12,035 bases of DNA from Zygophlyctis sp. KS116 (Eukaryota; Fungi; Chytridiomycota): positions 1-12,035 of the forward strand of contig BAAFSQ010000299.1 in NCBI GenBank assembly GCA_054661495.1. Direction: 5' to 3'. Both the position numbers and the translations under genes were made by a program. Shown here piece by piece: positions 1,925-12,035 of this stretch. Each line of letters starts with the position of its first letter. Positions within the stretch are counted from its first letter, which is position 1. The notes beneath the pieces were generated by a model, which was not told where the DNA came from, made no database searches, and worked only from the letters and a program-made list of their open reading frames with translations.

Positions 1925-3145
1925 ATGGATCTTTCGCTCATGGTGATCAATTTGTCTGATCCTCTCACCACTCATAATCCCTCCACTGCCTCTAAACCGG
2001 AATACTATGCATCTCTTTTCCTCTTTTATTCCTTTTTTAATTTAATCAGAGCTAGCTTTGGCTCTGCATGGATGATTGTTGAAGATTCTGATGAAATCGA
2101 TGCTATAGCTGTTTATTCAAAACCGCAACTTATTCTAAACTCGATTTCTTGTACAATGTCCTTGATCGCAATCATCAGTGTCATGATCAGACTAAAAGAT
2201 GATAATCTTTTATTATTATTAACTGCAATTATATCTATATTCATACAAATCTCTACTAGTATTGCATCATTGATCTCATTTTACTTTATCATTAGAAAAG
2301 GGAGAATATTTTTTGTCACTCAGGGATATTTAGCTTGTACATTATCTATTATTTTAGGGGGTTTATCTCTAATTTTATTCTCTATTGATCTGATATATCT
2401 AAGAAACTCTAAAAAAGCATTTAATTCATCTCAAAAAAGATTAATTTTTGCATTTTTCTTGGCACTTTTAACAACTATTTCTGGTGGATTTCTATTCATG
2501 TATTTAGAAGACTGGACTTTTGAAAAATCTATACAATTTGTAATTGTAACTCTTTTAACAATTGGTTATGGTGATGTATCTGCAACTCAAAATACTACTA
2601 AAATTGCACTAATGACATTTTCAATTTTTGGTTTAGTATTAATTGGATTTTTTGTGATTTCAATTGGAGATGTAATTGTAGAAAAATGTCAATATTCTGC
2701 TCTTCAACAATCTAGAAAAACTTCTTTAATTTCTCTTTCTACATGGACTAGACCTTTTTTTAAACAAATGCATTCAAGAGTTAATACTACTAGAAATTCA
2801 CACCTATTCAATGAAAATGATAGATATGATGCGGATGAACCATTAGAATCTAGATTAATTTATACCATACTATTTTGGATATTATTATACTGGATAGTAT
2901 CATCGTTAATTTTCTCTTGGTTAGAGGGATGGTCAATTTTGGATGGATTTTATTTTACATTTGTCACAATGACTACAATTGGATACGGAGATTTGCATTT
3001 AAGAAATCCTATTTCTTGGGATTTTTGGTATTTCTTTATTTTCAATGCAGTTTCTATTATAGCTTTTGTGGTGGAAGGATTTGGACATGATTTTGGTGTA
3101 CGATTGAATCGCATCTTTAGAAATTATTACTCTGATGACGGCTGA
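1925..3145 (+). CDS. TOK1: TOK-family two-pore-domain outward-rectifier potassium channel (8 TM / 2 P), 406 aa
   Basis: Intact single ORF with two selectivity filters (TLLTIGYGD, TMTTIGYGD), each preceded by the typical F..LE(D/G)W turret. Four additional N-terminal hydrophobic helices give the 8-TM TOK architecture. Confidence 0.88.
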   Translation: MDLSLMVINLSDPLTTHNPSTASKPEYYASLFLFYSFFNLIRASFGSAWMIVEDSDEIDAIAVYSKPQLILNSISCTMSLIAIISVMIRLKDDNLLLLLTAIISIFIQISTSIASLISFYFIIRKGRIFFVTQGYLACTLSIILGGLSLILFSIDLIYLRNSKKAFNSSQKRLIFAFFLALLTTISGGFLFMYLEDWTFEKSIQFVIVTLLTIGYGDVSATQNTTKIALMTFSIFGLVLIGFFVISIGDVIVEKCQYSALQQSRKTSLISLSTWTRPFFKQMHSRVNTTRNSHLFNENDRYDADEPLESRLIYTILFWILLYWIVSSLIFSWLEGWSILDGFYFTFVTMTTIGYGDLHLRNPISWDFWYFFIFNAVSIIAFVVEGFGHDFGVRLNRIFRNYYSDDG

Positions 3146-7134: not shown

Positions 7135-8070
7135 ATGATTGGTTTTCTGCTTGCATTATTTGCATCTATGGCTACATCTATGGCTACATCTAAAGAAAAT
7201 TCTATAATCATGGCTAAATCAAACTCTTTTGCTATAAAATTAAATCACAAGTCTATTTATTCTTTTTTAACAAGTACAAGCTCAGGAAAAGTATACCAGG
7301 GACCAAAAGTAAAAGGTTTAAAGAATTCAAATCTCAAGAAATTCAAGGGAAATATTGACAAGAATAGGAAAAGTAGGAAGAATGCAAAAAGGAGGACAAT
7401 GAATAAAGGACTGGAAAATGATCAAGTTTGTAGGATCAAAGAAGTTAAAATTGATTGGGAGCCTTTAAGATCAGATTTTATTCTCAAAGATGGTAATTGT
7501 TTTTATAGAGCAGTTTCTTACCAGATTTATGGAAATCAAATTTCACATTATAAAATTCGTAAGAATGCTATGCAGGTCATTCAAAATCAAAAAGAAAGGT
7601 TTAATTATCTTTTAGGAGATTTTATACCTGATGAATCAGGACAAAGAGCACTTAAAAAGACTTTAAATGAAACTGCAAATTATACTGGAGTAGATTTATT
7701 CACTAAAATTCATTCAATAAGCGGTGTATTTGCTGAAAATGAAGATATTATAGGAACTGCAGTCGCTTTAGGTTGTAAAATAAGGATATACTATGCAGAC
7801 TTGGGGTTATGTTATATTTACACGCCATATAATCTGAAAGAATACAGTACTATTGACTTGTACTTGAAAAGAAATCATTATGAAGTTTGGCTCAAGAATA
7901 ATTCTCAGAGAATGGACATCAATCGTAGTAAATTTTCAATTATCAATTCTGAAAAGTCAAAATCAAATTCTCAAGTATCAGACAATAGGATTATCAAGAA
8001 GATTCGACAGATTATTTCTGTATTTTTGATATTTTTGCTTCTAAAGAGAAATACTACTTTAGCTAAATAA
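7135..8070 (+). CDS. OTU-family cysteine protease/deubiquitinase with signal-peptide-like N-terminus and hydrophobic C-terminus, 311 aa
   Basis: Cys box ILKDGNCFYRAVSYQIYG (D119, C122) and His box LKRNHYEV (H248, E250). N-terminus MIGFLLALFASMATS; C-terminus IISVFLIFLLLKR. No intron is needed. Confidence 0.85.
   Translation: MIGFLLALFASMATSMATSKENSIIMAKSNSFAIKLNHKSIYSFLTSTSSGKVYQGPKVKGLKNSNLKKFKGNIDKNRKSRKNAKRRTMNKGLENDQVCRIKEVKIDWEPLRSDFILKDGNCFYRAVSYQIYGNQISHYKIRKNAMQVIQNQKERFNYLLGDFIPDESGQRALKKTLNETANYTGVDLFTKIHSISGVFAENEDIIGTAVALGCKIRIYYADLGLCYIYTPYNLKEYSTIDLYLKRNHYEVWLKNNSQRMDINRSKFSIINSEKSKSNSQVSDNRIIKKIRQIISVFLIFLLLKRNTTLAK
7163..7192 (+). repeat. 12-bp tandem duplication (2.5 copies) encoding SMAT-SMAT-S
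   Basis: catctatggcta catctatggcta catcta is seen directly. Confidence 0.85.
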
Positions 8071-10543: not shown

Positions 10544-12035
10544 ATGTCCAATGAATGTCCATCTATGAATTATAAACCTGTGTACGTAAATAATAAAATG
10601 TTGACTAGTCTTGGTGATTTTTTATTACAAAAGGAACTTTACTTTTCTCAAAAATTCAAGTCTGAAATTCTAAACTTTTCTGAAACTCTAAAAACACAGG
10701 GAGAGTTTGAATCTGTTTGTGTGTATGGATCTCTAGCAAAGAAAACTTGGATTCCAGGACTTTCGGACATTGATATGGTTGGTTATTTTTCTAATGATGA
10801 GAATGATCATTACCATAAGCTTGAAAGTTACTTGTTCTCTAAATTCGATGGGAAAGTCAAATCTTGGCCTACTAAATTCACAATTTCTTTTAATGGAATT
10901 AAAATTGATTTCAACTTGGAGAAATATTCTGGATCAAATGCATTGTTGACTCTCTTCAAGTCTGAAATATTTGAAGAATCTTTACCATTACAGTTACGTA
11001 AACATGGGCAAGAGGAATTAATGAAGGAATTAATGAAAGAATTGGAAAAAGACATTAAAGACTGTCAGACAAAGGTCAAGTTTCCAAAAATACCATCATT
11101 TATTATTGCAACTACAAAATATGTTTTGGATTTTTGTAAAGATGGTCCACTAAAACGAAAATTTACTCTGATTTGTAAATTCTGGGGATATTCAAATCCA
11201 AAAGATGTGGAATTCAAGTCAAAATCTTTGGTTTTAGAGTGTTTGGCAATTTACTCTTACAAGAAATCTATGAAACGGCAAAAGATTGAATCTCTAGAAG
11301 GACTTTTTATGGAATTTCTAAATATGGTGGAATTTGGATCAGAGTCTATCACTGCTGTTTTTGCAGAATATTTCATGGATATGACTGCCAATATTTCAAA
11401 AATTGAAATCATCTTAAATCATAGAGGGCCAATATTAACAGATCCTGGAAATATTTTAAATGCTTTAGAGGTTCCTTGGAAAAGTTTAAGAGGTTATGCA
11501 AAAAAGACTAGAGAAAGATTGAATAATCCCAAAATTAATACGCTTGTACTACCGCTTTTTAATTATTAGATGAATTTGTTTTCTGGATACTCTCAAAATC
11601 AAATTTCAATCAATTTTTTAGATTTTACAACTCAAGAAACAGATGCTGCAGAGATTATTACCAATCATCAAAGTCCTCATCCAGATACGGTAAAGTTTGA
11701 GCCTGAATGGTACCAAAATTTCGTGAAACAGAATATTTTAGGATCAATGATTGCTCTTTTTATCTGTTATGAGGCTGATATGATGTATAGTTTTATTTAA
11801 TGATTTTAAAGGATTTCATGGAGGGGGAGGAATGCAGTGCAAATTTCTGGAAAATGTCTAAATAGTTTGCCTCAGAAAGAAGATATTCTAGGATACTTTA
11901 ATTTGAACTCTAAAAATGTCAATGAGAAGGATAAGAAGACTGTCGGGTTTGAATATGTATTCTCGGATCAGCAAATTTGCATCAAAGTGAAAATTTGTTT
12001 AGGTTTCCTTGAAGAAAAGAGCATTCCCATGATAC
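10544..12035 (+). CDS. 2'-5' oligoadenylate synthetase (OAS)-like pol-beta-superfamily nucleotidyltransferase with an unrecognised C-terminal extension; 3'-open
   Basis: Predicted exons 10544..11545, 11570..11784, 11812..>12035 (at least 480 aa). Catalytic VYGSLAKKTWIPGLSDIDMV (G62, S63, D75, D77) and IKIDF (D122). OAS C-lobe-like motifs LICKFW (K212), SLVLECLAIYSY, RGPILTDPGN, W..L...A. Confidence 0.8.
11015..11050 (+). repeat. 12-bp coding tandem repeat (ELMK-ELMK-ELEK)
   Basis: gaattaatgaag gaattaatgaaa gaattggaaaaa is seen directly. Confidence 0.75.
11546..11569 (+). other. Predicted 24-nt phase-0 intron whose acceptor TAG is the apparent stop of ORF 10544..11569
   Basis: gtactaccgctttttaattattag; size, ttaat branch-like element and tag acceptor match the other introns in the window. 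Confidence 0.75.
11785..11811 (+). other. Predicted 27-nt phase-2 intron containing the apparent stop of ORF 11570..11800
   Basis: gtatagttttatttaatgattttaaag; removal gives a frame open to the end of the window (MISWRGRNAVQISGK...EEKSIPMI). Confidence 0.7.

Follow-up and report, generated by a model that had tools for sequence, protein, structure and literature searches.

The OAS-like gene and its predicted exons

The window, by which we mean the whole 12,035-nt stretch of DNA analysed here, ends inside a gene whose first part reads as an open frame of 341 aa (10544-11569, forward strand), which our analysis confirmed as real. The earlier note had described an enzyme resembling 2'-5' oligoadenylate synthetase (OAS) at 10544-11545. 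That this span is coding was confirmed, but it represents the first exon (Table 1) and not the whole gene, which runs past the end of the contig. Two alternative starts are possible for exon 1, at M9 (10568) or M20 (10601). The OAS-like motifs that the note had listed, including the third aspartate and the order of the C-lobe elements, are all present in the frame, and the alignment it proposed was reproduced by HMMER: when the family profile is aligned with OAS1 and OAS2, the catalytic signature is free of gaps and the C-lobe motifs follow the order seen in both enzymes. All seven family members keep the signature, which in four of them is interrupted or flanked by an intron, and D122 lies on beta strand 119-127 of the predicted model. 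The triad and the C-lobe lysine are retained in relatives at 24-45% identity. With S63, D75, D77, D122 and K212 present and conserved, the site appears catalytically intact, as the note had held, and the enzyme is apparently active.

Table 1. Features of the OAS-like gene and of selected neighbours in the window
Feature	Position	Strand	Remarks
TOK-type two-pore potassium channel	1925..3145	+	same contig; extra N-terminal membrane segments; fungal-origin marker
OTU-family protease	7135..8070	+	intronless-looking; N-terminal hydrophobic stretch, hydrophobic C-terminus; 92% identity to L002
Divergent neighbour, 154 aa	9984..10448	-	N-terminal hydrophobic stretch, one C-terminal membrane segment; no known family
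Exon 1, full OAS-like catalytic unit	10544..11545	+	334 aa; nucleotidyltransferase lobe and OAS1_C-like helical lobe
Catalytic signature GS..K.T...SDxD, aa 61-79	10724..10780	+	contains S63, K67, D75, D77
Third catalytic Asp, D122	10907..10909	+	invariant in the alignment rows covering D122
K212 in LICKFW helix	11177..11179	+	invariant; aligns with the OAS K-H-W lysine
LE..AIY helix	aa 228-239	+	C-lobe
P...DP motif	aa 294-303	+	C-lobe
W..L..A terminal helix	aa 311-319	+	C-lobe
Intron 1 (predicted)	11546..11569	+	24 nt, phase 0, GT..AG; contains the apparent stop of the open frame
Exon 2, first half of conserved linker	11570..11784	+	alignable in all family members
Intron 2 (predicted)	11785..11811	+	27 nt, phase 2, GT..AG; same site in L004 and L007
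Exon 3 start, remaining linker	11812..12035	+	continues past contig end

The apparent stop of the open frame (11567-11569) is the TAG acceptor of predicted intron 1. This intron occupies the same position in the orthologous loci L002 and L005 (24 nt in each), in L004 (25 nt, with a matching change of frame) and in L007 (30 nt). Read-through of the stop in place of splicing is ruled out, since L004 requires the removal of 25 nt with a change of frame. Intron 2 likewise varies in length, from 27 nt in the window to 28 nt in L005 and 29 nt in L002, the same frame being restored each time, and the casein kinase gene of the window has introns of ~25 nt. Were intron 1 retained, the TAG of its acceptor would close the frame in the window, L002, L005 and L007, yielding a protein of OAS1 size that consists of the OAS unit only. 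Three distant relatives have in common an extra phase-0 intron straight after the lysine of GS..K; the catalytic-motif intron at L008:232-312 resolves less cleanly, the best GT-AG join leaving a short insertion in the motif. Gene callers had missed the first exon in four relatives, and after its recovery GS..K, SDxD and the third Asp were present throughout.

The continuation of the gene was traced through L002, a contig from an independent assembly that is colinear with the window and 96.5% identical to it over 11.5 kb. L002 also matches the opening 101 nt of C290, another contig of the same genome, at 95% identity, and bridges a gap of 269 nt after the window. This bridge makes the window contig (C299) and C290 adjacent parts of a single chromosome, ~270 nt apart. 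The gap holds dsRBD 1, and C290:1-864 holds dsRBDs 2-4 and the stop; the open frame with the three repeats spans C290:1-861, and beyond the stop lies the DPM1 gene on the opposite strand. An OAS-like unit thus appears joined at the DNA level to four dsRBD-like repeats through well-supported predicted introns, giving a predicted full product of ~857 aa made up of the OAS unit, a linker and the four dsRBDs. Database searches and structure prediction used each exon of the spliced model separately, and the joined model was checked for reading frame alone. The orthologue bridge, together with the intron and frame evidence, eliminates the 341-aa frame as the whole protein. The two independent assemblies break within the same repeat array (end of C299 and start of C290; end of L002).

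The linker, of ~150 aa, is alignable across the family but has no Pfam match and no useful match in the PDB. In the tail, the three-repeat piece on C290 passes the Pfam dsrm cut-off (25.4 bits against 23) and single repeats fall under it. Folded without an alignment, the same piece forms three alpha-beta-beta-beta-alpha units in a low-confidence model (pLDDT 49), and this model matches the dsRBDs of TRBP, Loquacious, R2D2, NF90 (in tandem) and PKR. Two dsRBDs also form the end of the relatives L007 (OAS unit 43% identical) and L027 (~24%; dsrm at 31.3 bits). The fusion of OAS unit and dsRBDs is therefore old, as judged from these divergent relatives, and the number of repeats differs between species from 2 to 4. 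L010 has the OAS unit and linker but a different tail without a dsRBD. The C-terminal module that this relative has in place of dsRBDs (L010:1354-2169) ends in what resembles, by eye, a winged helix; neither this nor a Z-alpha-like look, also by eye, found support in Pfam or PDB searches.

Across the four repeats of the window gene, dsRBD region 1 (L.E) is mostly kept, the loop-2 His of region 2 is absent and the lysine motif of region 3 (KK..K) is partial; the last dsRBD of L027 carries a full region 3. Because of the missing His and the partial region 3, binding of dsRNA by the tail is likely but not certain, and each repeat may bind weakly or bind protein. The earlier note had called the activator unknown, and here its account can be amended: with four dsRBDs fused to the enzyme, dsRNA is the likely activator.

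Family assignment by profile and structure

Seven relatives, every one from an environmental assembly (95, 87-90, 45, 43, 28, 26 and 24% identity), were found among the 1.8 billion representatives searched. Word-based protein searches gave no additional relatives, and pattern scans of metagenome and viral contigs gave no further loci. The window protein itself contains the Pfam domain NTP_transf_2 (26.4 bits against a cut-off of 21). Taken alone it has no hmmscan match to OAS1_C at E up to 1, the region being 29-53% identical to that of the relatives that do match; three relatives pass the OAS1_C cut-off of 19.9 (P0004, 30.1 bits; P0006, 31.5 bits; P0007, 24.6 bits). A profile built from the distant relatives only gave the open frame 197 bits, compared with at most 6.3 bits for 500 shuffles, which, with NTP_transf_2 over its cut-off, places the resemblance beyond chance.

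When the whole-family profile was searched against the PDB, OAS2 ranked highest (1.2e-26), followed by OAS1 (7.8e-14), OASL (3e-10), the bacterial enzyme CdnC (7.5e-10) and then weaker CD-NTases, in agreement with the assignment to the OAS/CD-NTase group made in the note. A profile of the C-lobe only reproduced this ranking (OAS2, 2e-16; OAS1, 3e-9; CdnC, 5e-4). The note had also proposed asking whether a housekeeping nucleotidyltransferase would be the best match; OAS proved best by profile, and PAP/TRF4, TUTase, CCA enzyme, Nrap/Utp22, DZF and NF90/NF45 gave zero matches in the PDB at E up to 10, with the whole-family profile as with that of the C-lobe. Consistent with this, no family member has a Pfam match to PAP_assoc, TUTase or DZF. 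The best SMODS score was 14.1 bits against a cut-off of 26.5, CBASS models reached ~20 bits against 200, and an archaeal CCA enzyme model gave a weak match to the N-lobe, at 19.5 bits against a cut-off of 281. The window protein alone, searched by phmmer against solved structures, gave just a weak match to CdnD (E 1.8).

The structural comparison suggested in the note was carried out on an AlphaFold2 model of the exon 1 protein, albeit one of middling confidence (pLDDT 68). The top match by VIA-align was porcine OAS1 (Z 17.1 over 268 residues, rmsd 4.8), with ~16% identity to OAS over the structure alignment, followed by OAS2 (Z 16.1), CdnC and TUTases (15.8) and NF90-NF45 (15.0). Foldseek placed CdnC first and URT1 second. 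In a feature search of the ESM Atlas, which finds language-model neighbours, OAS clusters were top (score 0.96, 192/256 features) and DZF clusters ranked 12. The fold finds confirmation in Foldseek and in the Atlas shape search, neither of which separates OAS from TUTases or bacterial cyclases. With TUTases so close behind OAS1, structure alone does not decide the family; the OAS-family assignment rests on the sequence profiles, with which the structure is consistent.

Genomic setting and inheritance

The OAS-like gene is single-copy in this genome, neither single-protein nor profile searches having returned a paralogue, and its composition is host-like (GC 0.31, GC3 0.26, as in its neighbours). 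The divergent 154-aa neighbour lies head-to-head with it in four genomes, 95 nt away in the window, and is 37-42% conserved in L004 and L007 (dN/dS 0.62). NIPA and this small membrane protein are found upstream of the OAS-like gene in four genomes, and DPM1 adjoins it in this genome, in L007 and in L009/L027. No close match was found among viruses, phages or plasmids, tblastn against phage and plasmid sequences gave nothing meaningful, and viral structure matches to the OAS-like protein were weak. The single copy, host-like GC and GC3, kept neighbours and the extra intron shared by distant relatives together yield a history that, at the level of sequence, fits long vertical inheritance and not contamination or recent transfer.

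Exon 1 evolves fast. Its dN/dS against L002, which represents one close pair, is 0.79, compared with 0.03-0.30 for five conserved neighbours, CK1, CBS, TOK, peroxidase and NIPA (Fisher p 4e-6); two other neighbours also have high values, the OTU gene with 0.46 and the small ORF with 0.62. Within this one pair the ratio shows either weak constraint or adaptation and, being <1, is not proof of positive selection.

RNase L, which the earlier note had described as a vertebrate receptor, was not found in this genome as an ankyrin-kinase-RNase protein, in an assembly that may be incomplete. The sole Ribonuc_2-5A (KEN-type RNase) locus is a membrane-anchored kinase-RNase, that is, Ire1. Two Argonaute loci are present. 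Genome searches for SLATT_fungal, RdRP, DZF_N and OAS1_C were blank but had no working positive control, so absence is not shown.

Interpretation and comparison with known systems

The gene could encode a dsRNA-targeted RNA-tailing enzyme, an unlikely reading but one worth keeping in view, whose dsRBDs would hold the substrate while the OAS-type site extends viral dsRNA or precursors of small RNAs at their ends with nucleotides (possibly 2'-5' linked), as a mark or a block that needs no diffusible messenger. Accessory RNA-binding domains of template-free nucleotidyltransferases usually hold the substrate (PMC3467086), TUTases and GLD-2 lie within ~1.5 Z of OAS1 with URT1 prominent in Foldseek, the genome has its two Argonaute loci, and neither RNase L, SLATT_fungal nor any other receptor was found. 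However, the receptor searches had no positive control and so do not show that a receptor is absent, the whole-unit and C-lobe profiles match messenger synthases only, and the Pfam families PAP_assoc and TUTase are unmatched throughout the family. It is improbable, moreover, that the product is an NF90/ILF3-like RNA-binding scaffold that serves RNA processing and has no catalysis, or only incidental catalysis. The domain order is that of NF90 (PMC3467086), the tandem dsRBDs of NF90 match the tail, NF90-NF45 (Z 15.0) appears in the structural comparison and DZF clusters (rank 12) in that with the Atlas, and no separate DZF gene was found in the genome, by a search without a control. DZF proteins, however, have lost their catalytic residues (PMC3467086), whereas triad, serine and lysine are kept here over deep divergence; moreover, the NF90/NF45 chains present in the PDB went unmatched by profile, as did DZF in Pfam.

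That the gene is a housekeeping nucleotidyltransferase (PAP/TRF4, CCA-adding or Nrap/Utp22), OAS-like by shared fold only, is scarcely credible. The fold is common to all of these enzymes, the archaeal CCA model does match the N-lobe weakly, and the gene is single-copy and syntenic; this reading is nevertheless largely refuted by the profile searches, none of which matched the enzymes named, and fast evolution in a family of just seven environmental proteins among so many representatives does not suit a universal gene. Very improbable too is a non-fungal origin of the gene, whether by contamination, by mis-assembly or by recent transfer from a bacterial, animal or viral source. In favour of it, the assembly is of an uncultured organism, and the known proteins closest to the family are animal OAS and bacterial CdnC. 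Against such an origin stand the tiny introns of host type, the neighbour-like GC and GC3, the colinearity with an independent assembly, the same neighbours in distant relatives and the extra intron at one catalytic-motif site shared by three of them, as well as the lack of a close viral, phage or plasmid match. The contig also encodes a channel of the TOK type, whose topology is reported to occur in fungi only (PMC3410928).

We favour, with a probability of roughly 0.6, the reading that the locus encodes a single-copy, host-encoded synthase of the OAS family that is activated by dsRNA and carries built-in RNA-capture domains. The dsRBD array would capture long dsRNA by avidity, RNA viruses or mobile elements being its likeliest sources, and would present it to the OAS unit or concentrate it nearby. 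The dsRNA would switch on polymerisation of ATP by the OAS unit into a short oligonucleotide that serves as a signal. The likeliest product is 2'-5' oligoadenylate, although a cyclic oligoadenylate of the kind made by CdnC is possible, and the signal would act on a receptor other than RNase L. Such a design would be akin to PKR, with dsRBDs and a catalytic domain, or to OAS3, with a dedicated RNA-binding unit and an active unit. In favour of this reading stand the OAS matches by profile, language model and structure, the OAS1_C scores of three relatives, the triad and lysine kept over deep divergence, the dsRBD matches of the tail, the high dN/dS of exon 1 and the varying number of dsRBDs. Against it, arms-race genes do not typically stay single-copy and syntenic; relaxed constraint may explain the dN/dS of exon 1, L010 has no dsRBD, no receptor candidate was found, and the middling model, the structural closeness of TUTases, the lack of an OAS1_C match in the window protein alone and the incomplete RNA-binding residues of the repeats also weigh on that side. 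More tentatively, early-branching fungi might possess an undescribed, RNase L-independent nucleotide defence triggered by dsRNA, in which one protein uses an expandable array of dsRBDs to capture viral dsRNA and either makes a new signal or modifies RNA directly, as an active counterpart of the NF90-type architecture; this wider proposal we regard as possible but doubtful.

The vertebrate enzymes OAS1, OAS2 and OAS3 (OASa) and the patchily distributed unikont OASb resemble the window protein in the two-lobed unit, signature, triad, C-lobe lysine and motif order. They differ from it in carrying a UBL or repeated OAS units, where the present family has a linker and 2-4 dsRBDs. The OAS-RNase L pathway differs in relying on RNase L in vertebrates, whereas none was found in this genome, and the host here, a lake dweller, is probably a chytrid fungus. 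CdnC, a clade C CD-NTase that synthesizes cyclic tri-adenylate, is the nearest bacterial match by profile and the first by Foldseek; unlike it, the window gene is spliced and has dsRBDs, with no operon and no HORMA or NucC neighbour. In contrast to CBASS CD-NTases and eSMODS, the protein falls under all CBASS and SMODS cut-offs. NF90/ILF3 and SPNR (DZF with two dsRBDs) share the succession of a nucleotidyltransferase fold and tandem dsRBDs, but their DZF is a pseudo-enzyme, whereas in the window unit every catalytic residue is retained and the profile resemblance is to OAS and not to DZF. In PKR, dsRBDs capture dsRNA for a fused catalytic domain. The logic here would be similar, although with a nucleotidyltransferase as the catalytic domain and with the dsRBDs at the C-terminal end.

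Chu et al. (2023), who define the OAS unit as NTP_transf_2 plus OAS1_C, reported OAS-related proteins in amoebozoans, choanoflagellates and animals; the 15 fungi of their survey yielded none, and they placed the origin of RNase L in jawed vertebrates (PMC10400998). In the survey by Culbertson and Levin (2023), 8/12 supergroups contained OAS (PMC10732462). The window protein resembles their OAS superfamily as a non-animal eukaryotic OAS-like CD-NTase with apparently vertical inheritance; in their catalogue the OAS score is 0 across the identifier block with fungi, a block inferred from three named fungi, and in part of their domain table there is no dsrm entry (PMC10732462). NF90 and NF45, which are DZF proteins, have lost their catalytic residues, and as of 2012 zero template-free nucleotidyltransferases of known structure had dsRBDs (PMC3467086). 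No fungal OAS or OAS-dsRBD fusion was found in the literature searched, outside which most subscription journals lie, so that novelty is not proven. The locus thus appears to be a real OAS-family gene in a fungal lineage, with a domain architecture that we did not find described in that literature.

If the favoured reading is true, OAS-type immunity would extend to Fungi, and an ancient OAS lost from most fungi would gain support. What OAS senses and does outside vertebrates, without RNase L, becomes a testable question, since the dsRBDs of the protein themselves indicate its likely ligand, and a synthase without a known receptor offers a handle on a new receptor class. Placement of the organism outside Fungi would remove the claim to be first in fungi but not the fusion.

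The known antiviral defence of fungi is mainly RNA interference. A further dsrm domain in this genome (L017; C585:102-290, reverse strand) lies at the end of an 855-aa frame of a short contig and possibly belongs to a Dicer-like protein or a helicase.
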